From Thalia democratica (taxonomy: Eukaryota): 64,000 bases of DNA. A model generated the notes under the pieces. The model was not told the DNA's origin, made no database searches, and saw nothing but the letters and a program-made list of their open reading frames with translations. Positions 18,701-46,900 of this stretch are shown here, piece by piece (position 1 is the first letter of the stretch; the number at the start of each line of letters is the position of its first letter). Location: assembly GCA_965202585.1 (NCBI GenBank), contig OZ241829.1, positions 65,658,001-65,722,000 of the forward strand. The letters are read 5' to 3'. The translations under genes were made by a program, and so were the position numbers.

Positions 18701-19122
18701 AAAAATTGACATTCGGTAATATGGTCAAGGGAACTGATTTATGCTCAAACCTTTAAAAATATCAAAGAACTAAATTAATTAATAAACTCTAAAAATTTTT
18801 ATACTGTTGATAAATGATTAGAAGAATATCTACACAAGTAACTTGTTGCATTTGCATAAATAATCTGAGTAACTTTTTATTTCTTTTATAACTGTGTTTC
18901 TAAAAGTTGGTATAATAGCTTTTAAGAATTTATTTTACTGTATAAGTGCTGGTTAAACTTTTTTGTTAAACGTGTTTAAAATAGAATTTCTATAACTTTT
19001 TTTTTGGGTAAATCTCAACGCTTATAACATAAAAAAAGTATTCAAACTAACAAAGTCATAAAAATAAGTTCATAAAAAAATAAACACAAAACTGTTAAAT
19101 ATTTTTAACATAATTTATTTTT

Positions 19123-19938
19123 TCACCATTCCTTTATGTTCTTTTCCGAAGAAACGAATTCACCGTTCGGGGACTCCACCCCGACCGGAAGCGTCGCCAG
19201 GTAAACCGGGGCTTCGGCGCCCTGATCGGGCGTCCTCGAGGCCTTCTCCCCGCCCAAGTCCGTCTTCACCCACCCGGGGCACACCGCGTTGATTATGACG
19301 TCACTACCCTTCAGCTTCCTGGCCCACACGAAGGTGAGCGCGGACATGCCGACCTTGGACATTCCGTACGGCTGCTCCACGAACCCGTCCTCCTTGCAAG
19401 TCCCCCTCCGGCAGCTCTCGACGAACTCCTCCATCTTCCCCGTCAGCTCCTCCTCCGTCAGCGTCTCCCTCCTGAAGAACTTTTGGTTCTCCTCGCTCAA
19501 CTGCTTGAGGTACATGATGCTCAAAGTGCTGGACACGTTGACGATCCTGCCACCCTTCCTCACAATAGGAAATAGGATCCTGCTGATGTCGACGGTTCCA
19601 GTGTAGTTCGTCCTCACGCAGTCCTCCGCCTTTTTCACTAGCGGCGTCGCGTCGGTCGAGTCGTACGCGATGCCCGCGTTGTTCACGATGACGTCGATGC
19701 CCCCGTACTGTGACGTCATGAAGCTTTTGAGCCGCTCGATGCTCTTGACGTCGCAAACGTCCAATTCGTGGAACTGGGGGTAGAGTCCCTCTCTCTCAAG
19801 GGTCTTCACCGCCTCCCTGCCGCGCTGCTCGTTCCTGGACAGAATGAAGACGTCCCCGTCGAACTTCTGGCACAGCCCCCTGACGATGGCGAGCCCGATG
19901 CCCTTGTTGGAACCTGTTACTATGGCAACCTTTGTCAT
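19123..19938 (-). CDS. CBR1: NADPH-dependent carbonyl reductase (CBR1-like SDR), 271 aa, intronless
   Basis: TGSNKGIG Rossmann motif, NNAG, catalytic YGMSK, CPGWVKTDLGG, and the CBR-specific helical insertion (TEEELTGKMEEFV). CBR1-like; orthology not tested. Confidence 0.93.
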   Translation of the reverse strand: MTKVAIVTGSNKGIGLAIVRGLCQKFDGDVFILSRNEQRGREAVKTLEREGLYPQFHELDVCDVKSIERLKSFMTSQYGGIDVIVNNAGIAYDSTDATPLVKKAEDCVRTNYTGTVDISRILFPIVRKGGRIVNVSSTLSIMYLKQLSEENQKFFRRETLTEEELTGKMEEFVESCRRGTCKEDGFVEQPYGMSKVGMSALTFVWARKLKGSDVIINAVCPGWVKTDLGGEKASRTPDQGAEAPVYLATLPVGVESPNGEFVSSEKNIKEW

Positions 19939-21337
19939 ATTTAATTGATGTTTAATATTAATCTGTCTTAATTTAAATTTTTTGATATTACATTTATTAA
20001 TAATAATATTTTAATTTTTTACCTTAGTATGTAATACTAAATACTTTAAAAAAAAAGAAAAGCAAAGTACATGTTGGAAAAATATATTATTTAACATGTT
20101 TTACTAACTAGTATGCTAATTAAATGTTTTATACTATTGTTTCAAAAAGGAACAAAATTTTCAAAAGTACTGTGAATAGTCAGTTTGACTGTTAAAATAT
20201 TACATCATATAACTTTTTTATGTAAAGTTACTAATTTTCGCGCAAATGAAAGTTACTATGAATAAAAATTTGTGCATAAAGCATTGAGTTCAATAAACCT
20301 GTAAAGAAGTGTTTATACTTAACACATACTATTTATTTAAATATGTAAAATTTTGAAATTTATGCTACAACAAAAAAGAGTTGTTTTATTTTTGTATTAA
20401 ATATAAATATTAAAACAGTTGTGAATAATTTTGAGATTTGTTCAGCATAGTTAGTTTGTTTTCAGGCAAAATTGTAATCTAACTGAATTTGTATGTAATA
20501 TATGTATTTTATAAAACTTTTTACGAACCGTCTCAATTTTACACACAAAACACTTTGAAAGGTCTTCTGTTTATTTATATAAACATTGTAAATCGTGTTT
20601 GAAAAATAAACTACGAACTGATGGTAAAACTAACTAAGTTAATTAAGTTTGAACTTTAACCAAAAAAAGCTTAGTTTACTTAACTTAAAAACTTGTAAGT
20701 CACTTTCATGTGTATTTGTTTACAACTATTGTCAATATATAAAAATGAAAAGGCAGCACTTGTTGGTTATAAGTAAAGAACTTAAAACCAGTGAATGTTG
20801 GTGGATCATAAACTAAATGTTCTGTTTAGTCTTGCTGTCTGAAGCCAGATTGTCAGTCAGACTTTTCTATACGCTTTACATTAAGAAGGGCAAACACTCT
20901 AGGGTTTTTCAAATATATAGTTTTATCATTTATGTTAACTTTGCGTAACAAAACACAAACTAATTTTTTATTAAAGTAAGTATTATTAAAAGCTTGTAAA
21001 CTAGACACTATTTAAATTTGAAAAGTAGATACAAATAAATAAAAATCAGAGTCAATACGCTCAACGATTTAATTATAAAAAATTGATTTACTTTTTTGTA
21101 ACTAAAAAAATATTCACTTAACTAGTCTAAACGGCAAGTGCAAAATAAATAAGTTGTGAAGCTGCCTAGCTAACCAACTTTCGGTTATAAACGAAATAAA
21201 AACAAGCAAGTCGAGTAAATTAATGTTACATCTTTTACTGATCTAAAGAACTTTCTGTTGTAATTAAAAGGTTTTTTTTTAATAAAAAATTTCTTCACAA
21301 TTTTCCAACACAAACTACCATGCAAATGTTAAAAATA

Positions 21338-21407
21338 CGCTACCGACTGGATTCGATCTAGGTCCACTCGAGTGGGAATTTTTGTTTTAACCACTCGACC
21401 ATCTAGG
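21338..21407 (-). pseudogene. Degenerate tRNA-like sequence (tRNA pseudogene or SINE head)
   Basis: The minus strand reads ctagatggtcgagtggttaa...gatcgaatccagtcggtagcg, with A-box-like and B-box-like motifs at tRNA spacing. Anticodon arm and acceptor stem are not well formed. Confidence 0.45.
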
Positions 21408-25078: not shown

Positions 25079-25801
25079 TAGTTACTAAATATTTTTACCT
25101 ATTTTAAATTCCTAATGTTATGATCTTTTAAAGTATACAAGATTATTTAAAAGTATTTTTACAGTTTTCACCTTTTAGTACATAAATTTTCAAGTTTTGA
25201 TAATCTCAGGCTGAATCATAAAGATATTGAGTAAAATTTTTCAGGCTAGTTAAAACATTTTTGATAGTGTTTGCTTACATAATTATAGTAGAATTACATT
25301 ATCTTTTTATTAATATAGCATTGTTTGAAAAAACATCTTTTATTTTAGATTTAAAGTTATATAAATAAAGACAAGAAAATTTTTAAAATCCTGGCAGAAT
25401 ATTTAAAAACTTAAAACATAGTTCTAAAAAGCCAGTGGCCATCCTGTTAAGACATAAATTTCAGACATTTAAGGGTTTAAACATTTTGTCATTAGGTTAT
25501 TTTTAGTAGCTTTTTTCATTATACAGTTTTTATGATAAGTTTCTAATTTTAAACAATATATTAATACTATCAATTGCTTAATATTTAAACTACTGCAGAT
25601 CCACTGCTCTAATACCATTTATGACTAATAATTTAAACGAATTTATTACTATATAATTTTAGACTTAAAATAAAGGTTGATGACAGTATTAATATTTAAA
25701 TAAGTTAAAAAAAAAGGGTATAAAAGAATAATGTAATTACATAGAGTTGCACTGTTGTTTTGTATTTTGTTTTCATCTGTCTTTACTAGTTTTGGTAATT
25801 A

Positions 25802-26435
25802 CCTGGGATGATGTCCACCAATATCAAGCTGAAATTGTATTGTATTCGATGTCTTTTAAAAACAATTTTAAAATAAGAATTTATATTTTATACATACAAA
25901 AAATCATTTAAACTTATTTATCATAAACTAATAAAACTGAAATATTTGAACACTTTTATTTAAAATGTAAAGCGATTATATAAATGAATTAGTTTATATC
26001 GATTACAATAATACTGTGATATAAAATCTATAAATATTATAGTATGTAATAAATTTAATTATTTCTAATAAATAATGTAACTAGTTCAAAACAAAGTATC
26101 TTTTTAGATTAAACATAATAGGTTTGAAACATTGATATTTAGCTTAAAAGTATGGTAAAATAGATATCGAATATAGTATAATTTCAGCTTGATATTAGTG
26201 CGACATCACCCTAGGTCAGGGGTTGGCAGATCAAAAAAGGAACGTTTTTTATGTGGTTTCAAAAAACACATTTAAAGATAATTTTTTGATCATTAAAAAT
26301 TTAGGCGATAGATAATCCTTTAAAGATAACACTGTAATTTATTTTTTGTTTTTTGAGAATGTTAATATATCAAACAAGTTGAAAAAAAAGCTTAATGCGG
26401 ATCGCGGACCGCAGTTTGCCAACCCCTGCCCTAGA
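25802..26435. mobile_element. TA-flanked MITE (family B) interrupted in its right TIR by a hAT MITE
   Basis: Left end TA|cctgggatgatgtccaccaatatcaagctgaa; right end ttcagcttgatattagtgcgacatcaccctag. Confidence 0.65.
26217..26428. mobile_element. hAT MITE (212 bp) with 8-bp target-site duplication
   Basis: Perfect 12-bp TIR caggggttggca/tgccaacccctg flanked by ccctaggt and ccctagat (7/8). Confidence 0.88.
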
Positions 26436-26946
26436 TAGTTACTCATATTTATAGTAGAATTTCATTATCTTTTTATTAGTATAGCACTGTTTAAAAAATA
26501 ATTTAGTTTTAGATTTAAAGTTATCTAAAAATGACAAGAGAAGTTTTAAAATCCTGGCAGAAAATCTAAAAACTTAAAAGATAGTTCTGTAAAGCTAGTT
26601 GCAATCCTGTTTAGACATAAACTTGGATTTTATTTGTCATTAGGTTATTTTAGGTAGCTCTTTTCATTAAATAGTTTTTATGATAAGTTTCTAATTTTAA
26701 ATAATATATTAATATTATCAGTTGCTTAATATTTAAACTACTGCAGATTCACTACTCTAATACCATTTATGACTAATAATTTAAACAAATTTATTACTAT
26801 ATAATTTTAGACTTGAAATAAAGGTTGATGACAGTATTAATGTTTAAATAAGCTAAAAAAAGGAATAAAAGGATAATGTAATTACATAGAGTTGCACTGT
26901 TGTTTTGTATTTTGTTTTTATCTGTCTTTACTAGTTTTGGTAATTA

Positions 26947-27365
26947 CCTAGGATGATGTCCACCAATATCAAGCTAAATTTATATTACATTCGATGTCTT
27001 TTTTAACTATAATTTTTACATAAAAGTTTCTACTTTACATACACAAAAATATAATCTAATTTATTTATCATCAAATAATAAAACTAAAAAATTTGATCTT
27101 TTTTATTTACAATATCAAGCGATTATATAAATGAAATAATTTGTATCAATTAAGATGTTGTGAGATGAAATCGATTAAATATTTAAGTATGTACTAATTT
27201 ATTTTTATTCATACTATTAATTTTCGTAGCCAGTTTGAAACAAAGTATCTTTTTAGATTAAACATAATAGGTTTAAAACATTGGTTTTTAGCTTAAAAAT
27301 GTAGTTAAAAAAACGTCGAATATAGTATATATTTCAGCTTAATACTGGTGCAACATCATCCTAGG
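26947..27365. mobile_element. TA-flanked MITE (family B; Tc1/mariner-type TSD), 419 bp
   Basis: TA|cctaggatgatgtccaccaatatcaagct...agcttaatactggtgcaacatcatcctagg|TA; TIRs of about 35 bp. Confidence 0.7.
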
Positions 27366-27721
27366 TAGTTACCCTTATTTCATTTTACTAATTTTAAAAA
27401 TTTAAAGGAATATTTAAGATTTGTTAGAATAAATTAAAAAAATTTAATTAGTTGCTTTAAAAAAACTCAAAATGAAAGTATAAATCTGTGCCAACAAGGT
27501 ATTTGAAATTTAGTTACATAGACTATATTTGTGTTTTAAATGATTTTATTAGTTTAGAAAACATAATAACACGTACAGAAGTTTTAAAAGTCATTTGCTG
27601 ATTAAATATAAAACCAATAAAAATTCATTTTGAACGAATTTGTAATCTTGCCATTGTGTACTAATGGTTTAATAAATTGTTAGTACAGTCTGGCTCAAGT
27701 AAAACACCTTAATACTAACAG

Positions 27722-27860
27722 CCTGAAGGAATTGAGCAGTGCTTTTTGGAATCAGTTATATTCATGAATGAAGACGATGAAGCACTTTCGGACGCATTCG
27801 AGATAATTTACCCTAAAAATGTTGTACCAGGATGCGAAAGAGCGTCGCTGTACATTTACG
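27722..27860 (+). CDS. TEP/alpha-2-macroglobulin/CD109-like exon, unit 1
   Basis: 139 nt between ctaacag and gtagga; reads PEGIEQCFLESVIFMNEDDEALSDAFEIIYPKNVVPGCERASLYIY(G). Matches from memory the A2M/CD109 motif (P/A)EG(L/I)EK...P.N.V.(G/E)S.R....GD before the thioester domain. Confidence 0.72.
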
Positions 27861-28247
27861 GTAGGATTGGTTAAATACAGAACTTTCCATAAAATTTTGG
27901 ACAAATTACTTATTTAAAAAAAATAATATATAGTATGGTCTGTTACAAAAGATAATTCTTTATAGTTTTAAATATATAAACCAAAGTTAACTATTATAAC
28001 TATCCTGAAATAAGTTAATAACAAATACATTTAAAACATATAAATTAAATTACCACACTAGATAGTTTTGTATAATTATTTATTTTTCGGTTGTTTACGA
28101 AAGACTTTTGTTAACTTTTTTGATTAGTTTTGCTCAATAAAACAGCAGTTTTTTATTGATTACAGCTTGATACTTTTAATATCCCTAACTCTTTATTTCT
28201 TTTTAACATTTGTTATTGCTTGTAATCAAGTACTCTAAATCTACTTA

Positions 28248-28594
28248 CAGGGTTGTCACTTTACCTGGAAACATTGAAAAACCTGTAATTTTGAAGAAAA
28301 TCACTAAAAAAATTAGAATTTTAAACAATTTTTACATGTTATGTCGAAAAATCTTGATATGACGCAACAAATTTATCATATATATAATTTTTTTGATCAT
28401 CATCAAAAATTTCCATTCAAAAACACATTTAAAGTAGCTTAACCGTATATTTTTAATGTTTTTATACTATTTAACACAGTTTTTACCTTAAACTCAATTT
28501 TAAACTAAAGATAAACCGAAAAATGTGTACTTTTCAAAACTTGGAGGAAATTCTGAATACCTGGATATTTTTTTTTAAATGACTGATAACCCTG
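28248..28594. mobile_element. Family-A hAT-like MITE inside array unit 1 (homologous remnants in units 2-5)
   Basis: cagggttgtcactttacctggaaac...gactgataaccctg, similar to 23953-24350. Confidence 0.65.
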
Positions 28595-28830
28595 TACTAA
28601 CTAACTATTAGCTCATCCAGATTCGCCTTAACTGCGTTGTTAAACTAAGATGGTTTTTATATCGTTAGTGATTGTTTCAAAATTTATTCATTAAGAAAAA
28701 GCCGTTTGCTCATTGATAATGTAATAAATGATGAAAACTTTGTGGGTAAATTATTAGACAATTTATTTTAGAGCTCTAAAGCTTTTTTGATTGAACAAAA
28801 TTAATTAACTGTCTGAAAGAATATTAACAG

Positions 28831-29004
28831 AAATTTGTTCTGATCCCGGATGTACGGCTTACTTGAATTTATTCATCTACTTTAAGGTATAATTGGTTTA
28901 GTTAAATACATTTTTGTGATGTCACAATTCAGAATACTTCCTCAGTTTTCGATATCAGTCGTTTTCTAATTGGGACTTGTATCATTTTTATGGTGTCATT
29001 TTAA
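28831..29004 (+). CDS. Two small terminal exons, unit 1 (28831-28886 and 28933-29004): Cys motif plus GPI-signal-like tail
   Basis: Reads (E)ICSDPGCTAYLNLFIYFK | NTSSVFDISRFLIGTCIIFMVSF*, with canonical AG/GT and a 46-nt intron. Confidence 0.55.
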
Positions 29005-29482
29005 TGGTGTTGTTTTCAGAATAACAAATTATTTTTATTCTATCTTTCAGAAAATTCAAAAATGTATATAACTAAGAATAAGTTTTTGAATAATTTTGTA
29101 GTTACACTGGTTTTTGCATTTTTAAACATTTGTCTGTGTTTTTTAATCAACTGTAATTGATTGTACATACAAGACACGGCTTAATTGCATTTTATAAAAA
29201 TAAGTTTTCAAATTTAAAAAAAAATCTAAATTGAAGAATAAACCTTTTCCAACAAAGTATTTGAAATTTAGTTACAAAGATTACTAGATTTGTGTTTTAA
29301 ATGATTTTATTAGTTTAGAAAACATAATAACCCGTACAGAAGTTTTAAACGTAGTTTTCTGATTAAAAATAAGACCAGTATCAATTCATTTTGAACGAAT
29401 TTGTAATCTTGCCATTGTATACTAATGGTTTAATAAATTGTGTGTACAATCTGGCTCAAGTAAAACACCTTAATACTAACAG

Positions 29483-29621
29483 CCTGAAGGAATTGAGCAG
29501 TGCTTTTTGGAATCAGTTATATTCATAAATGAAGACGATGAAGCACTTTCGGACGGATTCGAGATAATTTACCCTGAAAATGTTGTACCAGGATGCGAAA
29601 GAGCGTCGCTGTACATTTACG
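29483..29621 (+). CDS. TEP/CD109-like exon, unit 2
   Basis: 139 nt, open frame, splice sites intact; carries M>I and A>G relative to consensus. Confidence 0.72.
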
Positions 29622-30630
29622 GTAGGATTTGTTAAATTCAGAACTTTCCATTAAATTTTAGATAAATATCTTATTTAAATAACGTCTAAAACCTTAAAAT
29701 AATATATTATTTAGTATAACCTATTACAAAAGATAATTGTTTATAGTTTTAAATATATAAACCAAATTTAACCATTATAACTATCCTGAAATAAGTTAAT
29801 AAAAAATACATTAAAAACATATAAATCAAATTACCACACTAGATAGTTTTGTATAATTATTTATTTTTTGGTTGTAAACAAAAAACTTTTGTTCGCTTTT
29901 TCGATTAGTTTTTCCCAATAAAACAGCAGTATTTCACTGAGTACAGCTTGATACTTTTTATCTATCTTGCTCAATATTTCTTTTTAACGTTTGTTATTGC
30001 TTGTAATCAAGTACTCTCAAATCTACTTACAGGTTTGCCACTTTATCTGATAATATAAAAAAACCTGGAATTTTGAAGAAAAATCACCAAAAAACCTGGA
30101 ATTTTAAACAATTTTTTAATGTTATGTCGAAGAATCTTGATATGACGCAAAAAAAATTATAATATAGAATTTTTTTTGGTCATCATCAAAAATTTTCATT
30201 TAAAAACACATTTAAAGTAGCTTAACCGTATGTTTTTAATGTTTTTATACTATTTAACACAGTTTTTACCTTAAACTCAATTTTAAACTAAAGATAAACC
30301 GAAACATGTGTACTTTTCAAAACTTGGAGGAAATTCTGGAAACCTGGATATTTTTTTTTAAATGACTGATAGCCCTGTACTAACTAACTATTAGCTCATC
30401 AAGATCCGTCTTAACTGCGTTGTTAAACTAAGATGGTTTTTATATCGTTAGTGATTGTTTCAAAATTTATTCATTAAGAAAATGCCGTTTGCTCATTGAT
30501 AACATCAATAAATTATGAAAAATTTGTGAGTAAATAGTTTGGTTTGTATTTTATTAGACAGTTTATTTCTGAGCTCTAAAGCTTTTTTGACGGAACAAAA
30601 TTATTTAACTGTCTGAAAGAATAATAACAG

Positions 30631-30804
30631 AAATTTGTTCTGATCCCGGATTTACGGCTTACTTGAATTTCTTTATCTACTTTAAGGTATAATTGGTTTA
30701 GTTAAATACATTTTTGTGACGTCATAATTCAGAATACTTCCTCAGTTTTCGATATCAGTCGTTTTCTAATTGGGACTTGTATCATTTTTACGGTGTCATA
30801 TTAA
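30631..30804 (+). CDS. Two small terminal exons, unit 2 (30631-30686 and 30733-30804)
   Basis: Reads (E)ICSDPGFTAYLNFFIYFK | NTSSVFDISRFLIGTCIIFTVSY*. Confidence 0.55.
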
Positions 30805-31283
30805 CGGTGTTGTTTTTGAGAAAAACATAAATTATTTTTATTCTATCTTTCAGAAAACTCGAAAATGTAAATAATTAAGAATAAGTTTTTGAATAATTCA
30901 GTAGTTACACTGGTTTTTGCATTTTTAAACATTTGTCTGTGTTTTTTAGTTACTGTAATTGATTATACATACAAGACACGGCTTAACTACATTTTATAAA
31001 CATTAGTTCTGTAATTAAAAAAAAAATCAAAGTTGAATAATAAACCTTTTCCAAAAAAGTATTTGAAATTTAGTTACATAGATTACTATATTTGTGTTTT
31101 AAATGATTTTATTAGTTATGATAAGATAAAAACCCGTACAGAAGTTTTAAAAGTAATTTAATAATTAGAAATAAGACTTATAAAAATTCATTTTGAACGA
31201 ATTTGTATTATTGCCATTGTGTACTAATGGTTTAATAAATTGTGTGTACAATCTGGCTCAACTAAATACCTTAATACTAACAG

Positions 31284-31422
31284 CCTGAAGGAATTGAGCA
31301 GTTCTTTTTGGAATCAGTTATATTCATGAATGAAGACGATGAAGCACTTTCGGACGCATTCGAGATAATTTACCCTGAAAATGTTGTACCAGGATCCGAA
31401 AGAGCGTCGCTGTACATTTACG
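31284..31422 (+). CDS. TEP/CD109-like exon, unit 3
   Basis: 139 nt, open frame, PENVVPGSERA. The downstream terminal exons are deleted in this unit. Confidence 0.7.
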
Positions 31423-32505
31423 GTAGGATTTGTTAAATACAGAACTTTCCATTGATTTTTAGACAAATAACTTATTTAAATAAAATATTATATAGTGTGG
31501 TCTATTACAAAAGATAACTCTTTATAGTTTTAAATATATAAATCAAAGTTAACCATTATAACTATTCTGAAATAAGTTAATAACAAATACAAACATGTAT
31601 ATAAATTACCACACTAGATAGTTTTGTATAATTATTTGTTTTTCGGTTGTTTACGAAAAACTTTTGTTAGCTTTTTCGATTAGTTTTGCTCAATAAAGTA
31701 GCAGTTTTTTATAGATTACAGCTTGATACTTTTCATCTACCTTACTCTTTATTTCTTTTTAACGTTTGTTATTGCTCGTGATCAAGTACTCTCAAATCTA
31801 CTTACAGGTTTCCCATTTTACCTGGAAACATGGAAAACCCTGTAATTTTGAATAAAAATCACTAAAAAACCTGAATTTCCAATTAATTTTTACATGTTAA
31901 GTAGAAAAATTTATCACTTAAATAATTTTTTGGTCATCATCAATTTTTTTTATTCAAAGACACATTCAAAGTAGCTTTACAGTATGTTTTCAATGCTTTT
32001 ATACTAGTTGACAAAGTTTTTTTTACCTTAAAATTAACTTGAAACTAAAAGTACACCCTAATATGTGTACATTTAAAACCTGTAAAAATTTTGTTAAATG
32101 CGGCTGATAACCCTGTACTAACTAACTGTTAGCTCATCAACATTTTTAAGATTTTTCTGTGTTTTTTAATCAACTGTATTTGATTTTACATACAAGTCTC
32201 GGCTTAATTACATTTTATAACTATAGCATTACTAATTAAAGAAAAAATTAAAATGGAAGAATAAACCTTTGCCAACAAGGTTTTTGAAATTTAGTTACAT
32301 AGATTACTATATTTGTGTTTTAAATGATTTTATTAGTTTAGAAAACATTGTGACACGTATAGAAGTTTTAAAAGTAATTTGCTGATTGGAAATAAGACCG
32401 GTAAAAATTCATTTTGAATGAATTTGTAATATTCCTACTGTACACTAATGGTTTAATAAATTGTGTGTACAATCTGGCTCAAGTAAAACACCTTAATACT
32501 AACAG

Positions 32506-32644
32506 CCTGAAGGAATTGAGCAGTGCTTTTTGGAATCAGTTATATTCATGAATGAAGACGATGAAGCACTTTCGGACGCATTCGAGATAATTTACCCTGA
32601 AAATGTTGTACCAGGATCCGAAAGAGCGTCGCTGTACATTTACG
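32506..32644 (+). CDS. TEP/CD109-like exon, unit 4
   Basis: 139 nt, open frame, PENVVPGSERA. The acceptor of the downstream Cys exon is mutated. Confidence 0.7.
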
Positions 32645-34060
32645 GTAGGATTGGTTAAATACAGAACTTTCCATTAATTTTTAGACAAATAACTTATTTA
32701 AATAAAATATTGTAAAGTATATTCTATTACAAAAGATAATTTTTTTAGTTTTAAATATATAAACCAAAGCTAACCATTATAACTATCCTGAAGTAAGTTA
32801 ATAACAAATACATTAAAAACATATAAATTAAATACAACATTAGATAGTTTTGTATAATTATTTATTTTTTGGTTGTTTACAAAAAATTTTTACATGTTAT
32901 GTCGAAAAATCTTGATATGACGCAAAAAAATTATCATATAGAATTTTTTTTGGACATCATCAAAAATTTCCATTTAAAAACACATTTAAAGTAGCTTAAC
33001 CGTATGTTTTTAATGTTTTTATACTATTTAACGCAGTTTTTACCTTAAACTCAATTTAAAACTAAAAATAGACCGAAAAATGTGTACTTTTAAAAACTTG
33101 GAGGAAATTCTGAATACCTGGATATTTTTTTCTAAATGACTGATAGCTCTATACTAACTAACTATTAGCTCATCCAGATCCGCCTTAACTGCGTTGTTAA
33201 ACTAAGATGGTTTTTATATCGTTAGTCATTGTTTCAAAAATTATTCTTTAAGAAAATGCCGTTTGCTCATTGATAATGTCAATAAATGATGAAAACTTTG
33301 TGAGTAAATAGTTTGGTTTGTATTTTATTAGACAGTTTATTTCTGAGCTCTAAAGCTTTTTTGATTGAACAAAATTATTTAACTGTCTAAAATTATAATA
33401 TTTGGAATTTGTTCTGACCCCGGATTTACGGCTTACTTGAATTTCTTTATCTATTTTAAGGTATTATTGGTTTAGTTAAATACATTTTTGTGATGTCATA
33501 ATTCAGAATACTTCCTCAGTTTTCGATATCAGTCGCTTTCTTTTTGGCACTTGTATCTTTTTAATGGTGTCATATTAACGGTGTTGTTTTTCAGAATAAC
33601 AACTTATTTTTATTCTATCTTTCAGAAAATTCGAAAATGTATATAACTAAAAATAAGTTTTTGAATAATTTTGTAGTTACACTGGTTTTTGCATTTTTAA
33701 ACATTTGTCTGTGTTTTTTAATCAACTGTAATTGATTTTACATACAAGTCTCTGCTTAATTACATTTTATAAAAATAAGTTTTCAAATTAAAAAAAAAAA
33801 AATCAAAATGGAAGAATAAACCTTTTCCAAAAAAGTATTTGAAATTTAGTTACATAGATTACTATATTTGTGTTTTAAATGATTTTATTAGTTATAATAA
33901 GATAATAACCCGTACAGAAGTTTTAAACGTAGTTTTCTGATTAAAAATAAGACCAGTAACTATTCATTTTGAACGAATTTGTAATCTTGCCATTGTATAC
34001 TAATGGTTTAATAAATTGTTCGTACAGTCTGGCTCAAGTAAAACACCTTAATACTAACAG

Positions 34061-34199
34061 CCTGAAGGAATTGAGCAGTGCTTTTTGGAATCAGTTATAT
34101 TCATGAATGAAGACGATGAAGCACTTTTGGACGCATTCGAGATAATTTACCCTGAAAATGTTGTACCAGGATGCGAAAGAGCGTCGCTGTACATTTACG
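34061..34199 (+). CDS. TEP/CD109-like exon, unit 5
   Basis: 139 nt, open frame. The downstream Cys exon (from 34981) has a premature TAA. Confidence 0.7.
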
Positions 34200-35899
34200 G
34201 TAGGATTTGTTAAATACAGAACTTTCCATTAAATTTTAGACAAATAACTTATTTAAATAAAATATTATATAGTGTGGTCTATTACAAAAGATAACTCTTT
34301 ATAGTTTTAAATATATAAACCAAATTTAACCATTATAACTATCCTGAAATAAGTTAATAAAAAATACATTAAAAACATATAAATCAAATTACCACACTAG
34401 ATATTTTTGTATAATTACTTATTTTTTGGTTGTAAACAAAAACCTTTTGTTCGCTTTTTCGATTAGTTTTTCTCAATAAAGCAGCAATATTTTACTGAGT
34501 CTAGCTTGGTACTTTTTATCTATCTTGCTCAATATTTCATTTTAACGTTTGTTATTGCTGGTAATCAAGTACTCTCAAATCTACTTACAGGTTTGCCACT
34601 TTATCTGATAATATATAAAAACCTGGAATTTTGAAGAAAAATCACCAAAAAACCTGGAATTTTAAACAAATTTTACATGTTATGTCGAAAAACCTGGATT
34701 TATTATTTTAAATGACTGATAGCCCTGTACTAACTAACTATTAGCTCATCAAGATCCGCCTTAACTGTGTTGTTAAACTAAGATGGTTTTTATATCGTTA
34801 GTCATTGTTTCAAAAATTATTCTTTAAGAAAATGCCGTTTGCTCATTGATAATGTCAATAAATGATGAAAACTTTGTGAGTAAATAGTTTGGTTTGTATT
34901 TTATTAGACAGTTTATTTCTGAGCTCTAAAGCTTTTTTAATTGAACAAAATTATTTAACTGTCTGAAAGAATAATAACAGAAATTTGTTCTGACCCCGGA
35001 TTTACGGCTTACTTGAATTTCTTTATCTAATTTAAGGTATCATTGGTTTAGTTAAATACATTTTTGTGACGTCATAATTCAGAATACTTCTTCAGTTTTT
35101 GATATCTATAGTTTTCTTTTTTGGTTTTAAATCTTTTCTAAGATGTCGTTTAAATGGTGTTGATTTTCAGAAAAAAATTATCTTCTTTTTCAGGATGAAT
35201 GTGAATTTTTATCCAATATCCTTATTTTTCTACGTTTAATTTTCGATAATATATCCCTTTTTCTACAGTATTTGTTTTTAACGTAGTAATCTAGTTCAAG
35301 TTTTTTATTATAGAACCAACTAACACGTTTGATGTACTTTTAGTTTATATTAGTGATGAAAGAAACTTTTGTTACTCAAGTTTTTGTAGTTTTATATGGT
35401 TGTCTTAACTCAGTGAATACCGCTTGTTCTGTATTTATTTCCTTTCAACAACAACAAATAATATTTCTCTATTGTATTTGGTTAGAATCTTTTACAGAAC
35501 CTTGAAATTGATCTTTATTTGACTTTTGTTCTTCTTAAAATTATTTTATATAGTTCTAAATTTATGCAAAGCTGGTTTGTGTTGACCTATCAATTTTACA
35601 TTTTTGTACGTTTCTTCATTAGCAAACCAAAATGTATTTTTAATTAAGTTAATAGTTGTTATGTTTCGCGATAAAAATCCACGATTTTCAAAAATGAATT
35701 TTGTTATGTTATTTAAATAAGTTTATAATTTAGCTTTGGTTGCAGTGCAGTTTGTACTTTGCTTTATTTTAAATAAGATTTTTTTTTTGACATTAAACAA
35801 ACAATATTTAATTCTAGTAAGTACGTCTCTTTTTTAAACAGTGCTCTAAGTAGACTAATTGATTCATTATAATAATATTCAATATAATTCATTATGATA

Positions 35900-36023
35900 A
35901 TAAGTTTTTATACTATTTAACACATTATCTTACCTTAACCTTAACTTTAAATTAAAAATAGACCCAAAAAAGTGTACTTTTAAAAACCAGGAAAAAATTT
36001 GCCAACAGTATTTGGCAACCCTA
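35900..36023. mobile_element. Right-hand fragment of a family-A hAT-like MITE
   Basis: aaaaatagacccaaaaaagtgtacttttaaaaa...tggcaacccta matches the right end of 23953-24350. Confidence 0.55.
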
Positions 36024-37260
36024 TTTTATGCTATAAACTAGTGTTTTAAATATAAAACTAATATTTTTGATTAAAGGGAAAGAAAATTAAACACATTGAA
36101 ACTGTAAAGTAAGTTGAACTAAAACTAGATAACACTTAACTAATTTTAAGTTGAATTTCTCGAATATGTGATTGCTTTTGTGTTAACAATATAAGTATAT
36201 ATTTCGAAACGCTACTTTTAATTTTGATGCTTTCAAATTTCTTAGTTTTTACTTATGTAATTAAATAACCAACATATCAAGATAGCAAGTTAATCTCAAA
36301 ATAAACGTTCTCTAAGGTAAATCTATGGTAAATTTTTACAGCTTCAGCTTAAAAGTTCAACGTTAGTAAAATAGAAATAATAATTTAATATAAAAGCAAG
36401 TACTAACTAAATTTTTGAATAAAAGCAAAACTAAATGAACACTTAATTGAATGAAAATTTTAAACCATTTGTATTTTTGCTGTCATTTTTAAATTTTGTG
36501 ATGCGCTAAGTTGCAAACTAAGATTTTTATTGAGTTTCTAACCTATAACCGTTCATAAAATAAGTGTTTGACAAAAGTGTGCACATTGAGCAGTAAACTT
36601 TGAGAAACCAACTTTAAACTACTTTATTTCTGTTTAATTTTGTATCAAACCGTTTCTGAAATTATAAAATTACTGAAGTATTTCTAGAGTATCGAGTTCT
36701 TAATTTGTTAAACCTAAATTCTTCGTATATTTTTTAGCTTTAAAGTTAATATCAAAAGTAAAAGAACAAAAACGTTATGTGTTATCATTAAAATTTTATT
36801 TATAAATCTTTTGTTATCCGATTTTTATTTATTTTTCATTCCAGTTTTGTACCTCAAGTCGTGCTTGTGGCCTCCTTTTCCTGACGCATCTTGTTAGTGT
36901 TATTTTACCCATAAAAACAGAACATACTATTAACAGACGAACAATTTTATAATTTTACGAAATAGAAACTAAAACTATTTATTATATTTAAAATGTGTAA
37001 TTTCATAGGTGATTATGAAGAATGACCGAGAAGACGCAAAAAGGACCCGAGAACCAGAGGCGAAGCAATTAAGAGATACTGCAAATTTGTTCCTACGTCA
37101 TAGTGTTTCTTACTTTAATAGGTGAATATTGTTTGTTTTAGTTTATAATTTATAGTTATAGTTGTTAAAATTAGTTGTATTTTAATATTTAAGCATACAT
37201 TTCAATGTAATTCAGTATAATACAAGTCAAAAGGTAAAATACATTTTAAAGTAAAGTTTT

Positions 37261-38086
37261 TTACCATTATTACGTCATTAAATTATTTGGAATGAAGCAG
37301 GACCTGACCACAAGGATAGCCTAAACCAGAGGTCGCAGTGAAATTAAAAAAAAAATGTTGTCCACACTTAATTAAAAAATTATAAAAACAAAAATGGGAT
37401 AAAATATACTATGATAAAGCACTCGTAAATAGTTTTATTATGAACATTCAAGTTCTTTTGTTTTAAAGTAGTGCTTAATTTTATCTGCTATTGAAACTGT
37501 CGCTCTACAAACGAAATTTGATTAAATGTTTAGTTATACATAAAAGTTAAGTGAGCTATCAATTAATTAGCTTCACGTGCAAATCTGATGATACTCCTTT
37601 AACTTAATAGCTTAATACTCAATAAGAATTAAAAACCGCAGTCATATCATTCCAGGGCAAAACTAGTTTTTAACTATTATTACGTCATTAAATTATTTGG
37701 AATGAAGCAGGACCGGACCACAATGGTAGCCTAAACCAGAGGTCGCAGTCAAATTAAAAAAAAACGTTGTCGCGGTCCACACTTAATTAAAAAATTTAAA
37801 AAACAAAAATGGGATAAAATATACTATGATAAAGCACTCGTAAATAGTTTTATTATGAACATTCAAGTTCTTTTATTCAAAGTAGTGCTTAATGTTATCC
37901 GCCATTGAAACTGTCGCTCTACAAACGAAATTTGATTAAATGTTTAGTTATACATAAAAGTTAAGTAAGCTATCAATTAATTAGCTTCACATGGCGTCAG
38001 GTACAAATATGTTGATACTCCTTAAACTTAATTCCTTAATACTCAATAAAAATTAAAAACTGCAGTCATATTATTCCAGGGCAAAA
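37261..38086. repeat. Tandem repeat of about 410 bp, 2 units
   Basis: Units start at 37261 and 37671 (attattacgtcattaaattatttggaatgaagcaggacc...ttccagggcaaaa). Confidence 0.9.
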
Positions 38087-39179
38087 TTATGAGTTAACAG
38101 TAGCTTTAAAAGGTCCTTACAGTTCAAAAGAAAAACTTATGGAATATTTGTTACATGTCGTTTTGTAGTAGTAGAAAAATGTAAAAGTTTAAATTACTGT
38201 GTACATCATATACACAGCTGAATATTTATTTATATTATTTCGAACATAACCTTTAGAGTTGTACAACTCAGTACTGTTGACTAAAAAGTTTATTTAAGCT
38301 TTTTATTTTATAGGTGTTTCGTACTTTTATAAACTAAAAATACATACTCAGCTTGAATACATTTAATTATATCATTAATTGTTTAAAAACACAGTAGTAA
38401 TAAAATTAAAGTTTGCTTTACAGTGTTAAGCTTATTAACTGTACCACAAATTTCAAGTAATTTATTTTTTGATACGCAAAGTTTATGGTAATTTTTAGCT
38501 TTGATGATGTTGTTAAAAGTAGTTTTTTGTTGAGAGTTACTTTTATTATTTACTTTAAACTTAGAGATTAAAACAAATACAATAATCAAACTTACTATCG
38601 AATTTGTAACAACTCAATGAGTAAAAAATGTATTATGTTTATAAAGTTTTCAAAATAGTATAGTTATTAATGAAACTTTAAGTACTTGCTATTCTTTAAA
38701 ATAAAATATTAAAGTCAAAAACAAAAATAGTGTTGAAGTAAACTTATAAACTGCAGTAATTGTTATAAACGAAATTACAAAATGTTAAAAGTTAAATGTT
38801 ATTAAACTTGTATTAATACTTGATCTTTGAAAAATAATAGTTTATCTTAACTTAGATTTAAAAGTTGCGCAATATTTATATTCTATACAACATTAATTAA
38901 ACAATTTAAAATTTGAGTTTTTATTCTACACAGTGTTTAATGCGTAATGCAATGATCACGAACTAAAAGCTGTTTAAAGTAAGACTGACAAAGCTATATA
39001 TACTAAATTATATAAGTCTGTTAAATTGACAAAAATTTCAAAGTCTTAATAACGAATTGAATAACTACTATAGAGCTATCATTCAAGTTATTATGAGTGT
39101 TAAATTAGTTTTTTATACAAAAAACTTATTGGATACAGCTTACAATGAAATAAAAATATAAAATACCAATACGATATAA

Positions 39180-40600
39180 ACACAAGCATAAATGCAACAA
39201 ACTTAGAAAATGGTAAAGTATGCAATTACGGACACGAAAATGTTATGATTTTAGATATTTAGCGAAGTATCTACATTTACCAATTAACTCAGTTCTTGAG
39301 TTGAGAGAGGAGTTTTTGTCAGCGATCGCTATTTCCAATTTTTCAATATTACACAGAGTGCATATTCTGCTCGGTTTGCGTTGATTAATTTTATGCATTA
39401 TCTTCCATTTAACATTGTTCTTAATCATATCTTCATTGAACTTAGCGGCGTGAAAAAATTAGCTGAATTTTGTGGATTCTTTCAGATTTTAATTTCTGCA
39501 GCTATGTATATTTTCTTTGTATCTTGTTTTAAAGTTTTTTGCAGTGTATCCAAAATAAAGCTGTTCTTTGTTATTATATGTGACAGTAGCTTTGTATATG
39601 AAACGTCTGGAAAGGCATTTACCTTCCACTGGGCATGAGATTCTAATTCTACAATTGAAACTTGTTTCATTTTTCTTTTTGTTTTTACTTTCCTCTATGA
39701 TTTTAGACTTGATTTGCTGATTTCGGATTCTATGTTGGGCATACATGAATAACCTATTTTGATTGCCTCTCTGTTGAGAATTTTATATATATTTGTTTTT
39801 AGGGAAATGCTTATCTACTGATTTAATTTTTTTTTTCCTATTTTGGTCTTTAATGTTGCTCTAAAAGGAAGGTTGTAGTATAACACTTGTTTTTTTTTCT
39901 TTTTCTATCGCCCCTACCATCATTTTGATTTGAGTATTCTAAAACTTTATTAAAACCACTGTTTTTTAACGCTTTCTCGTATGATTTCTTGTAATTATCA
40001 GACATAGTCTTGTTTTTTGATAAATCAAATAGTATATTTTGTTTCATATTAGATGGCTCTCTTTTGACGCTTGGTTAGATTTTATATTTATGTTTTTTTT
40101 TCTTTAGCGTTTGGTTTTCTGTGGGGATGATATATCATTCTGTAGATCAAGTAATACATCCAGGAAGTCTATGTTACTGCTGTCTAATTCAATCTTATTT
40201 TTTGAGTTTTGTTCAGAGAAAACCGCTCTAATTTCTTTTCTTGTCTTTTCTATGACTCTTTTTGATCGCTTTTTAATTATAGAAATTCCATCATCGCGCT
40301 ACTACTCGAAGTTATCTTTAGATAAAAATTAGTTTAGGTTATTCAATTGGAACAAAACGATTAACTTGCAAACTTCAGCGCCATGGTAGCTTCCCATCGG
40401 AACGTCAAATAGGTCTTCTTTTGCATTCTTTTTGATCCAAACTTCGTTGACATGCCTGAGAACTGTCTTGCACGAGTGTAGTATAGTATATATGTCTGAG
40501 TTTGTTATTTTCATATATTTTTTGCAAGTTCGATCGATTTTTTTAGTAACAGATTTTTCGAGATACTTGGGTAGGATTCTTCTATATTAAATTTTATAAA
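39180..40600 (-). mobile_element. Decayed Penelope-like retroelement (RT plus GIY-YIG endonuclease)
   Basis: Minus-strand fragments FNIEESYPSIS, FDVPMGSYHGAEVCKL, *RDDG (YRDD with Y to stop), NIDFLDVLLDL, CPVEGKCL..IYKATV....YFGYTAKNFKTRY, KWKI...CTLCNIEK...LNSRTELIGKCR. Multiple stops and frameshifts. Confidence 0.85.
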
Positions 40601-41516
40601 CGTGTAACTACTCTTGTTGTTGATTTTATTAGACCATTTTGTAACATTATCAATTTTTATCCATTGCTGTAACTTAGTTTTTTTCTTTAACTTTATTCTA
40701 AATTCTTAACAATAATTTTATATTATAAACAATCAAATAGTAAGTTAAACGCTTGTGCAACAGCAAACAATTAATGTATATGTTATAATACACAACATAA
40801 AGGTAATTTTAAAGTAAATAAGATAACTGGTCACTCTTCTTAACATTCTTAAAGCTATTGAAAAAATCAAAGACCTTATGTAAACACAAGAAATTTTTTC
40901 TTCAATTAAAATATATTGCATTTGGTTTAAATTGTATATTTGTACAAAGTGTTTACATCCTTCTTTTTATTCAAAATTTCATTGCTTGCCTAAGCTTACC
41001 GATTTTCTGCTATAAGATTCTATTTTTGTTTTGTAGTAACAACTGCCAGAAGTTTTTAAGCAATGGACATTAATTAAAACTGAGGATGTTTCTTAAAATC
41101 ATGTCCATCATACTAACTTTAAACCTCATAACAGTTTATACTGAAAATTCTCTATTTATTAAAAATAAGTAAAGTATTTCAACTAAAACATTAAAAGACT
41201 TTAAATTAAAACAGTAATGATAAAACAGAAGCGTTTAAATTTGTGTTAATTTTATCACACATGTTTTAATGAATTCACCTTGTTTATATCATAGTTTTAA
41301 TTATAACTGTATAAAACTATTCGTTTAACTTACAAAAATAACTATTATATGCTATAACTTTTACTAACAACTAAAAAAGGACTTGGTAATTTGAAACCCT
41401 AGGTGATTTAAAATTTTTACAATTATTTTTGTGCAAAAAAAAACGATGCTCACCTTTTATAATTTAAGACGAACTTTCTATAAAAAATAAATAGTCATTC
41501 TTATGGAAAAAATTAG

Positions 41517-42455
41517 AAAATTTTGACTCTCTTGAGGTAGCTTACTTAGTAATTTTTGATAAAAAAAAAAGACCTTTCGTCTTTCGACGAAAAGCCTTTA
41601 GAAAAAAAAAGGGAGAAAATGAAAAAAAAAATGGCGCAAAAAAGCCCCCGACGAGCCGCGGCTCGTCGGGGGCTTTTTTGCGCCATTTTTTTTTTCATTT
41701 TCTCCCTTTTTCTCTACCAACCGTTCCTTCAACCTCTCTTTTTTTTTTTCTCAATCCACAATTTTTGAAAAAGCAACCCTCCCCCGCTTACTTATAATTG
41801 TTTTTTCGAAGCTCCTGCTTCCCTTTCAATATATTTCGCTTCTACTCACCTCTATCTTTTAAAGCGACCATGAGAATAAGCCGCTTTTTCACATGTACTA
41901 TTTTGAGTGCTTCGCCTTCGCATTTTCTAGTATTTCGCCTACTCCGCTTCTGTCGCCCCGGCCGAAGCTTCACCTGTAGAAATGCTTTAGTTAATATCAC
42001 TCAAACGTACTTTTAACTGGGCTGAATCATGTCAGAGCTCGTTCATATACTGCTACGCCTTCTGAGAGAGCGGCTTCTTTGCTCAACGGCTTGCTTAGGA
42101 CGGCACGTGCCTTGCTCTCGCTTTACCTTCCCTTGGTGCTTATTCAATCGGCTCTGTTTAATCGCCTAGCTGCGGTCTTTCGACTCCAGCTCGAGTCGAC
42201 GGCCACGTCGACTGAAGCTATATGCCTGCAAAAACACTAACACACAACCCGCCTTCACCACGCCTACCCGCTTAGACGTCTAGGGATTTATTCATTACAG
42301 CTTTACATTGTAAAATCCCTAAGCTGACTAGGTCGTCAGCTCGCTTTCTGGCACACTACAAGTGCCTCTCTTAATAGTGTAACATTAAGCATACGCGTAT
42401 GATGCCGAAATGTACGTGTTGAAAAATTTGGCTACCCCAAGAGAGTCAAAATTTT
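41517..42455. mobile_element. Unclassified element of about 940 bp bounded by 25-bp inverted repeats, GC-richer than flanks
   Basis: aaaattttgactctcttgaggtagc at 41517 and gctaccccaagagagtcaaaatttt at 42431 (one mismatch); no long ORF and no TSD recognised. Confidence 0.55.
41606..41711. repeat. 106-bp perfect palindrome with no spacer
   Basis: Checked base by base around the centre gagccg|cggctc (41658/41659), out to aaaaagggagaaaatg / cattttctcccttttt. Confidence 0.95.
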
Positions 42456-43935
42456 TCTTTCTTTCATAACATTACATTTTTACAATATTACTTAACTTAT
42501 ATGTGATGCACTTTATATTATCATGTTAACCAACTACACTATACACATCTATAAGGACACTAAGAGGTACGCATTTGCGTAAAGTACGCACTTACATTAA
42601 TAATGAGTTAATTTATTAAGTATAAATGTGAAAGTTTTTGCCTTTTTCAAACTTAAATAATGTGTAACTATATATTATCTTTACTTTATAGCCAAGTACA
42701 GTTTTTTTTTCAGTTAAACAGCTATGACGTTTTAGTTGTAACAAATATGGTTCATTTGCATTGCTAGCTGTTTTAAATATTACAAAGTTACATAAATAAG
42801 AAGTTTTTTTTTTAATTAAAACTGAACAAAGATTTTTTATCACATATACATGTTCCTCCTTATAACAAACTTAATAACTACATGTGCTTTTATATAACTA
42901 ACAAGTTTCTAATATAAAATTTTGTTTTATTAATATTTTATTATCTATTAATTAAAAATTAATATTTTAATATCTATATGATTTGATTCTTTTAATTTAT
43001 TTTAATAACATTTTTGAATGTGTGATTATTTTTGAAATTATTATTGTCACTCAGAAAAATTAAAAAAAAAAATCCTAAAGCTTGTTAGCATTTTCATATT
43101 AATTAACTTAAATTTCATAACTTAAAACTTATAAGTTTTCTTATTAATAATTAATTACAAAACTTGTAAACTGACTATTTCAATTAAGAAAACATAACCA
43201 AACCAGTTTATAAATGATGTATTTTTTATTAAAATTAAATTTTGACATGTTATTACTTACTTGTGCTTTGTGTCATGTTATTCTTATCATGTTCAACAGG
43301 GAAAATGTCCATATTCAATTTGCGTCCTCACTGCGGGGAAGCGGGTCCGGCTCACCGCCTTGTGACCGGTTTCGTGCTGGACGAAAACATCAGTACTTCT
43401 GTTAAGAAAAGTTTGCCCTGTTTGTATGTATATTGTATAATATTATCAGTGAACTTTCATAGATATTGCTGAATTCTACAAATAAAAACAGTTGTGTATT
43501 GTTGACATTTTTTTAATTTTCTTTAATGTTAATTACTTTAAAACGATTACTCATCTAAAACATGTGGATTTATAATCTTTTCATTGGATAAAACTTAATG
43601 AAAGTAGTTGCTTCCTTTTGTTAATAAATAATTTAATTTTTGTATTTTACCCTAAAAAGAATTCAGAGAGAGCTCTTTTTTATTTTTTCTTTTTATATGA
43701 ATTTCATTCAGTTATTAAGATTATGTATATTAACCTAATTAAAAACTACATTTATTTTAACAAAACACTAATGCGCATCTATTTTTGAATTTTGTTTTTT
43801 TAAATTTTTCTATACTTGTTTTTCAGCTAAACGAGGTTGTATAAACAAAGTAAAACAAAAAAATTGTGTAATTTCTTATGTAACCAACAAAGTTGTACAA
43901 ACAGACAAGTAACTAACAACCTTTTTACGTTTCAG

Positions 43936-46900
43936 TCTGCCAAGGTGTACCGTCGTTCGACGGAGCAACGACTCACATCGTCCACCAGCGGCAGCCCCAA
44001 CTGTCCAGTTTCGTCTACGGCGACGTGCTGACGTTTTCCTGCGACGGCCACAAACGGTTTCTTCCTTCCAACCCGTCGCTGACTTGCCAGGAAAACGGAA
44101 GGTGGGGACCCGACACGCTGATTGGCTGCGTTGAAGGTAAGAAAAAATCCCCAAAAGTATGAGTACAATCTAATTTGACTTTTTTTTTCACAGATGACGT
44201 GTGCCCGTCTCCACCGCAAATCGCCTTTTCCTCGCACCACGACTACTACAGGCCTCCGACTCCGGCAAACTCTACCGACTCGATGTGGCTTCCGGAAACG
44301 ATCCTGCGTTACGAATGCAACGATCAGTACCCGATAACCGTTCCCGACGACTTCTTCGGGGCGAAATGCACCAGCAGCGGCGCGTGGGTGGGCGCGTATG
44401 GAAAATACCATCCTTCGCATGAAAAACCTCACGATATTAAAATGAACGACAAGAAGTTCAAGGAAAAGTTTGGAAAATGCGTCACTGGTATTTTTAATTT
44501 TTAATGTTTAGTCAACCTTTTTGTGTTTATAATTCACTTGAAGTAAGCTAGTAGCAGTTTATAGTTTTTTAGTTAGAAATTACGTTCGAAAAGGTACATG
44601 ATGTCAATTTCAAGTTATTTTGATTTAAAAACTAAACTGCTACCACCAGTATCTTTGAAATATGTTGTTCCTAGGTTAACAATTACCACTTCTAATTAAG
44701 TTTTTAGCAAGCCTTTATGTTTCCAATTTTAGTTTGTTAAAACTTTTTTTTTACAATTGTCTATATTGACCCATGTACGACTCTGTTCTCGGCATGCTTT
44801 TTAGAAATTGCGTGGGATTTTTAAAAGGTTTATAAAATAAATTTATTTTAAAAATGCAAAATTTATTTCAGAGTGTGAGTTTCCCGATCCACATAACTCA
44901 ATAAAAACTGTGCTAAAATATCTTGAAGTCAATGCGTCATACTCCATACCTTCAGTCGTCAGGTACACCTGTAACGAGGGTTACCATTGGACGCGGGTGG
45001 CAGTTGTGAGCTGTCGCCACCAAGATATTCAAGATAAAGGTCCTTTCGGAAGATTAAACACGCTGCTTGGATTCTGTGCACCCGGTTAGCTTCTTTTAGT
45101 TTCAAAGATAAATTTTTGTAAACAAATTACAAAACAACTGAATGTTTTAAATTAACAACCGTAAGTATTTATCTTTTCTGTTTTTTAATATGTCGAATAA
45201 TTTAGTTTTGTTAAAGCCTTTCAGCGCAAAGTATTGCTACTGAAGTTTGTACATAAGTTTAAGGTAAAATAAAAAATTACTAATAACTTTTAGCTTGCCC
45301 GCCACTCCCATTTTTAATACGAAACGGGGTTAAGCGAGTTATTAGGCAACCGAATCGAAGGAGCTTGGTTTCCTTCTCGACAACCATACACTACTTTTGC
45401 AACCAAGGATTCACTCCGACTTTTGTAAACAGCCGATACAGTTGCAACTACGCTGGGAGCTGGCAAAATTCAGAGCTGAACCCTAGGTGTTTGAGGCGTA
45501 AGTTGTAACAATATTGATAAGTGTTTGTTTATCAGTCCACCTACTATTTGACTTTAAGGCTGCCCTAACCTGCAAAACGATCCGTACGGAAGTCTTGAAG
45601 CATCTGTACAAGCTCGGACTAATTTCTATCTGGCCGGTGACCGAGTTGAACTAAGCTGTGATGATGACTACGTGTTGAGCTCAGACTTAACAGCTTCAAG
45701 TACAACTTTGTCCTGCCTGTCAAACGGAAGGTGGAATTACGAAAAAATACCGGTTTGTATTAAAAGTGAGTTACGCAAATAAAAAGCTTTTATTCTTATT
45801 CTGTTGAACTTTCATTTATGTAAGAAAAAAATTTAAGACGTTCTTTTATTTTGACACCTAAACTTGTTTCAGAAGTGATTAAGCACTAAAATTAGTGACC
45901 TAACAAGTTTAGTTGATTCGTTTTTTCATTAGTTTAAATGCATTTAAACTAATTTATTAACTTAATTTTATCTACAATATACTTCTTTTCTATTCAATTT
46001 GTTTATTTTAAGGATGTGACGACCCTCCTCGAGGCGACTTTCTAAATTCCACGATAAAGTTCAGTCACGCGCAAGGAGAATACTGGTCGTACACCGTAGT
46101 GGAGTACGTATGCAAGGAAAAACACACTTTTAAATATCCCGATGAGGACGGGACTCGCACTTGTGAAGGAGACGCAAACTGGAGCGATGACTCCCCTCCT
46201 GAGTGTGCTCCCGGTTAATAAATGATAAAAATATTATCACTATCCCAACAAATACTTTTAGTTATATTTAAATCTGTGTGTAAGAAATAACAAATAAACT
46301 ACACTTAACAGAATGTGAAACTCCTCCAGCCGTCGAAGGCTCAACAATTAAAATTTTAAACGACTCATTTATTGAATACGAATGTTTAGACGGTTATCAC
46401 ATTGACAACGAGTCGAACAGCGTTTTCGAGTGCAGGCTCGGTCCTGTTTGGTTTCCCTTGGAAACTCCTGTCTGTCTAAAAGGTAAATAAATACCAGTTT
46501 TTACTGCAAACTGTTTGTTAGACAAATTTCAAGCGTCTAAAAAGATCCTCTCAGGCTCAAATCAATTTCCTACTCTAAAATTTTTTAACGGACTGTTTTT
46601 AAGTGTCTTGAAATGTTATCAAATTTATTACGAGTTTATCTTTTCTAGAATGCAACAGCATACCCGTGTACGATAAAACGTTGCCCGCTGTTGTTACAAA
46701 GAATGTTTCAAGGGAGGGCAAGCTTATAACCGGATCATCGTTGAATTTCAGCTGTCAACCAAACTACGGCCTGATCAACTCGATATCGAGTTGTGGCCTC
46801 GACGGCAGATGGACGCCCGAGATCACGTGTGTTCGAGGTATGTATATTTGCACGTGAAAAAATAAATTAAAAACAACTCATTTTTTTGTTTTTAAAGATT

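Follow-up and report, generated by a model that had tools for sequence, protein, structure and literature searches.

A tandem array of exon-like frames in the genome of Thalia democratica is probably a gene-fragment macrosatellite

The genome assembly of the pelagic tunicate Thalia democratica (GCA_965202585.1) contains, within a 64,000-nucleotide (nt) stretch of contig OZ241829.1 (positions 65,658,001 to 65,722,000 of the forward strand; this whole stretch is the window, and positions are counted from its first letter), a head-to-tail array of about 4.9 kilobase (kb)-sized units in which an open frame of 139 nt, bordered by splice signals, recurs five times with hardly any change. The peptide that this frame would encode, 46 residues in length, resembles what we take to be the pre-thioester segment of A2M/CD109-type thioester-containing proteins (TEPs), and the array is probably a gene-fragment macrosatellite, the decaying and amplified remnant of a gene rather than a working gene. 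Gene-fragment macrosatellites are tandem arrays of kilobase units that hold a gene or part of one, D4Z4 with DUX4 and RS447 with USP17 being human examples. A first-pass annotation of this DNA had offered two alternatives, a membrane-anchored, thioester-less mini-TEP with alternative 3′ cassettes or a pseudogene amplified in tandem, and it is the second, a gene remnant, that fits the data.

Repeat finding and self-BLAST delimit the array at 27456-35181 on the + strand, slightly wider than the five-fold array at 27490-35180 that had first been recognised. The unit starts are spaced by 1761, 1801, 1222 and 1555 nt, the final unit is truncated, and units 3, 4 and 5 each bear independent deletions. 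The tandem junction was recovered from independent data, in that a contig of sequencing run X3 joins position 29271 back to 27541, thereby going back 1731, and one public-run contig skips 28617-29120, a 502-nt deletion that corresponds to the unit-3-like form devoid of the two supposed tail exons considered below. In each of five units, the 139-nt open frame is found on the + strand at the following positions, given with the array itself and with the residue changes that tell the copies apart:

27456..35181, + strand: tandem array, supported by self-BLAST, repeat families and the contig junction in run X3
27722..27860, + strand: exon-like frame copy 1, with K32
29483..29621, + strand: exon-like frame copy 2, with M15I and A25G
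31284..31422, + strand: exon-like frame copy 3, with C7F and C38S
32506..32644, + strand: exon-like frame copy 4, with C38S
34061..34199, + strand: exon-like frame copy 5, with S23L

Relative to copy 1, copies 2-5 possess two to three base differences each and no insertions or deletions (indels), and all five copies are bordered upstream by ctaacAG and downstream by GTAGGA; the first-pass description of indel-free copies with a ctaac motif and intact AG and GT, set in indel-rich DNA, holds for five of five copies. Frame +1 alone is open, with stops one codon upstream of the AG and 11 nt downstream of the GT, and the G+C content rises from approximately 25% in the surrounding DNA to 41-42% within the frame. 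Across the five units, 6 of the 139 exon columns vary; in the flanks, the ungapped columns number 657, of which 168 vary (Fisher p = 8e-10). Gap columns number zero in the exon and 1024 in the flanks. Pairwise divergence is 1.9% in the exon (26/1390) versus 12.1% elsewhere in the unit (1481/12208), and no other 139-column window of the unit is less divergent. Chance falls far short of producing such a pattern, which is therefore real. CTAACAG was uninformative when considered as an acceptor signal in general, with 10 matches against 6.5 expected, five of which are the array itself.

The five units can be grouped by their parsimony-informative two-versus-three splits, which set apart units 3 and 5 nine times, 1 and 3 eight times, 2 and 5 eight times, 1 and 4 seven times, and 3 and 4 four times. 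Along the unit these splits are interleaved and mutually incompatible, which marks the units as mosaics that arose as copies exchanged sequence. The manner in which the exon varies bears on whether protein-level selection has kept it alike. All six variable exon sites are nonsynonymous (E32K, M15I, A25G, C7F, C38S and S23L), and two of them fall at cysteines. The exon has 29 synonymous sites against 109 nonsynonymous ones, and the probability that none of six changes is synonymous is 0.24 under neutrality, 0.022 at an omega of 0.3 and 0.006 at an omega of 0.2; ordinary coding constraint is therefore unlikely. Approaching the exon from upstream, variation density declines in steps of 10, 8, 3 and 3 variable columns per 30, followed by 1-2 inside the exon. 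We infer that the likeness of the exon copies is maintained by exchange between units, which would be most efficient where the sequence is free of indels and richer in G+C.

The first-pass annotation had extended the frame through two short exons, B and C, to a terminal stop, and the two frames are indeed present in units 1 and 2 with phases that join in frame. The supposed tail exons and their counterparts are as follows:

28831..28886, + strand: 'exon B' of unit 1, EICSDPGCTAYLNLFIYFK
30631-30686, + strand: 'exon B' counterpart in unit 2, intact, with C changed to F
33405-33460, + strand: 'exon B' counterpart in unit 4, with TG where the acceptor would have AG
34981-35036, + strand: 'exon B' counterpart in unit 5, with an in-frame TAA
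28933..29004, + strand: 'exon C' of unit 1, NTSSVFDISRFLIGTCIIFMVSF, followed by a stop
starts at 30733 and 33507, + strand: other 'exon C' counterparts
start at 35083, + strand: 'exon C' counterpart in unit 5, with an early stop after 15 codons

Only units 1 and 2 retain intact versions of both B and C, which are broken or missing in the other three of the five units, with the entire B and C segment deleted from unit 3. The CSDPGC motif is confined to unit 1, the other units carrying F at the second cysteine. Identity between units over B and C is 0.82-0.95, which is the level of the adjoining spacer, and B and C behave as neutral DNA. A 13-residue hydrophobic end is preserved in units 1, 2 and 4, is cut short by the stop in unit 5 and is deleted in unit 3; short hydrophobic tails arise easily in DNA of 25% G+C.

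Each unit also carries a second, much shorter repeat, which in unit 1 reads:

28248..28594 (delimited also as 28232-28594): short repeat, putative miniature inverted-repeat transposable element (MITE), found in every unit

In two public runs, the summed contig depth over 28232-28551 is 1e5-1e6, as compared to 1e3-1e4 for the remaining unit, a hundredfold excess. The putative MITE has putative terminal inverted ends, seen by eye rather than reported by a program, one reading CAGGGTTGTCAC and the other, which is GTGACTGATAACCCTG-like, being given by TGACTGATAACCCTG in reverse complement. This short repeat, probably a MITE and very abundant in the genome, was already in the segment before amplification. 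A partial copy of it lies at 35930-35999.

The exon stands by itself in the window. A six-frame scan of the 64 kb for GCGEQ, CGEQ and G?C[GA]EQ was negative, in agreement with the first reading of this DNA, which had seen no GCGEQ. Likewise, no further PEG or GS.RA frame, no other TEP-like frame and no diverged sixth copy of the exon is present in the window, and neither are neighbouring exons for MG domains or a receptor-binding domain, nor constitutive exons that would flank the cluster on either side. Over the 7 kb that precede the array there is no candidate for an upstream exon, a start or a signal peptide. The islands of elevated G+C found at 20.5-27.4 kb and at 35.2-37.3 kb consist of repeats or of short frames that are unrelated. 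With no gene around it, the exon is therefore an orphan here. The array is positioned inside a 16.5-kb stretch for which a segmental duplication, at 98% identity, has no equivalent in its second copy.

A history of the array can be proposed. A genomic segment of approximately 1.8 kb, comprising a single exon from what is most likely a CD109/TEP-like gene, its intron flanks and the short abundant repeat already inserted, would have been amplified head to tail via unequal exchange. The copies have no partner exons, and the spacers, together with the supposed tail exons, have accumulated deletions, lost splice sites and stops. Ongoing recombination or gene conversion between units, and not selection on a protein, has probably kept the exon nearly identical. 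Kilobase units arranged head to tail and inclusive of non-coding DNA, a tandem junction seen independently, a coding part that seems free of protein-level constraint and units in decay all characterise a macrosatellite, and all are found here. The array is akin to known macrosatellites in its head-to-tail kilobase units, in the co-amplification of coding and non-coding DNA, in its independent deletions and in its mosaic copies; it differs from them in that each unit holds a single 139-nt internal exon rather than a whole open reading frame (ORF), and in that divergence is 6.5 times lower in the exon than in the spacer.

Public sequencing runs that contain the exon provide a further view of the array. 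They derive from three coded organisms and from marine metagenomes, and four of them were aligned to unit 1. In X1 and X3, the contigs extend across the spacer as they do across the exon, and searches of the runs found none that is marked as RNA and contains the exon. Among the contig joints listed for these DNA-like runs, none is shaped like the proposed introns and none falls at 27860, so that the first-pass junction 27860^28831 is not among them. A contig of X1 that crosses into the array from the left has a depth of 588, while the exon has a depth of 5,600-13,600; if the former is taken as single-copy depth, the X1 genome would hold roughly 10-23 copies of the exon. In run X14, a relative possesses 27695-27833, including the intron end, with six differences, followed by 12 letters unmatched to the window.

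Four considerations weigh against a decaying macrosatellite of TEP descent. A 6.5-fold lower divergence that is centred exactly on an open frame with intact AG and GT would also be expected from selection on an exon in use. The six substitutions are too few to discount weak constraint or diversifying selection. The runs are of unknown kind and are judged to be DNA; they amount to 7 million contigs of about 1 Gb in total, with even spacer cover and many variants at 90-95% identity, and they therefore look like genomic DNA, which confirms the array but carries no information on expression. Lastly, a TEP origin of the frame, which its motif resemblance renders plausible and fairly likely, was not backed statistically by any of the searches.

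The resemblance is one of motif content and spacing. In the peptide, PEG is followed by about 27 residues, by P-x-N-V-V-P-G-S-E-R-A, by six further residues and by a split G codon (GD in TEPs), which we take to be the pre-thioester pattern of A2M/CD109 proteins; CSDPGC of unit 1 likewise resembles the CSD..GC that presumably lies near the glycosylphosphatidylinositol (GPI) site of CD109. The likeness to CD109, a GPI-anchored TEP, is confined to the motif level and presumably comprises PEG...P.N.V.GSER and CSD..GC with a hydrophobic tail; the array differs from CD109 in having no thioester domain, MG domains, signal peptide or significant similarity, and in that its tail frames are mostly broken. 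The first-pass annotation had made its TEP/CD109 homology call conditional on a significant match, and none to the A2M family was returned by any search; by that standard the call fails, although 46 residues are a query of little search power. Pfam gave 0 families and the PDB no A2M-family chain, both at E up to 10; phmmer against 1.84 billion representative proteins gave 0 matches at E up to 0.001; and a word-indexed set of 5.8 billion protein clusters, for which only matches of 0.55-1.75 times the query length are returned, gave no candidate. To our knowledge, no Pfam model covers the pre-thioester segment. Modelled alone by AlphaFold2, the peptide reached a predicted local distance difference test score (pLDDT) of 55 and a predicted template modelling score (pTM) of 0.19, too poor for fold comparison. 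Several candidate relatives were discarded: the peroxiredoxin-type and tryptophan synthase matches from the Pfam and PDB scans are chance (E of 0.14 or more), the ESM Atlas neighbours are noise, being unrelated bacterial families with scores of 0.62 or less, and ten loci in JGI metagenome contigs that share a 19-mer with the exon show no similarity to the unit by BLAST, so that these 19-mer matches are chance as well. A macrosatellite whose frame came from another gene or from a mobile element, with the likeness to PEG...P.NVVPGSERA being a coincidence, would account for the failure of Pfam, the PDB, the representative and word-indexed protein sets and the language-model neighbours to yield an A2M relative; the match in motif spacing and content, the CSDPGC of unit 1, the low power of a 46-residue query and the lack of any Pfam model of the segment known to us speak against it, and we regard such an origin as doubtful.

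Live alternative exons, mutually exclusive or cassette, would place one of the five copies in each transcript of an unannotated mini-TEP or of a larger TEP-like gene with its remaining exons beyond the window. Tandem homologous exons of equal length and phase, with AG and GT in five of five copies, are what a mutually exclusive cluster presents, and the array presents them; the exon is, moreover, the conservation peak of the unit, and as 139 nt cannot be divided by three, a transcript with two copies would be thrown out of frame, a property common to many mutually exclusive clusters. TEP genes, which comprise 35-43 exons, do carry tandem mutually exclusive exons in snail, scallop and fly, BgTEP2 having 12 within 30 kb, CfTEP six and Drosophila Tep2 five (PMC7016707). 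The array shares with these clusters the tandem exons of equal phase, the kilobase spacing and, supposedly, the protein family. However, BgTEP2, CfTEP and Tep2 clusters lie inside complete TEP genes, encode a variable bait-like region in strongly different copies and are seen in transcripts, whereas here no host gene is present in the window, the copies are near-identical (93-98% in protein, with almost no variety), the supposed segment is pre-thioester and the array is known from DNA alone. No constitutive TEP exon flanks the copies in the window, and upstream of them are a CCP/C-type-lectin gene and a dehydrogenase gene on the opposite strand; the tail exons are broken in most units; no spliced joint appears among those listed; and the peptide occurs in no database protein or short ORF. 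The membrane-anchored mini-TEP with alternative 3′ cassettes, a version of the same idea, finds no support, B and C being unconserved, an upstream exon candidate being absent from the 7 kb before the array and the changes in the exon being exclusively nonsynonymous. Alternative exons in current use are thus unlikely, and the gene-fragment macrosatellite is the closer match.

Conservation of nucleotides in the face of solely nonsynonymous differences, together with the mosaic units, would also suit a library of silent copies that donate sequence by gene conversion to an expressed TEP gene, or a source of small RNA. The copies differ at six sites only, no acceptor gene was identified, nothing ties the array to an expressed locus, and homogenisation alone explains the pattern; we consider such a library or source highly improbable. 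That exon arrays are kept for the benefit of an immune TEP gene, be it as alternative exons spliced over a long distance or as silent donors that diversify an expressed exon, is a hardly less remote prospect; were it true, the silent-donor case would provide an invertebrate counterpart to the diversification of antigen receptors from pseudogene templates.

A segmental duplication dominates the window, relating 6745-20580 to 43712-57528 at 98.2% identity and 37255-41531 to 59725-64000 at 97.9%; the DNA between the duplicated blocks amounts to 16.5 kb in copy 1 and to 1.66 kb, unrelated in sequence, in copy 2. Within the duplicated DNA are a portion of a long CCP/C-type-lectin gene on the + strand and, on the − strand, an intronless short-chain dehydrogenase, which is intact at 271 residues in both copies (19123-19938 and 56071-56886). 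Short ORFs on the − strand at 39243-40514 and 61711-62982 were duplicated with the segment; one of them contains Y..T......YFGYT..FK.R...H, reminiscent of GIY-YIG nucleases. They have no Pfam match and are probably a decayed mobile element. Immediately upstream of the array, 25278-26216 and 26444-27366 form a two-copy tandem repeat of approximately 0.93 kb at 85% identity. In between the two copies is an element of 224 nt, bounded by terminal inverted repeats of 18 nt (26211-26228 and 26417-26434). Neither Rfam nor a tRNA scan gave a call at 20-43 kb; a G+C island at 21330-21400 looks tRNA-like or like a short interspersed nuclear element by eye and was called neither by ARAGORN nor by Rfam. 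Directly preceding the second duplicated block, an isolated exon-like frame of 38 codons at 37009-37122 on the + strand has 40% G+C, AG before it and GT after it, and no Pfam match.

If the array is merely a set of decaying fragments, the genome of this pelagic tunicate adds one more example of a gene-fragment macrosatellite, and with it the caution that, in AT-rich DNA, a sequence with intact splice signals and in-frame joins need not be a gene. A sharp conservation peak that arises without coding constraint could, in turn, help to gauge how exchange between repeats depends on base composition and on freedom from indels.

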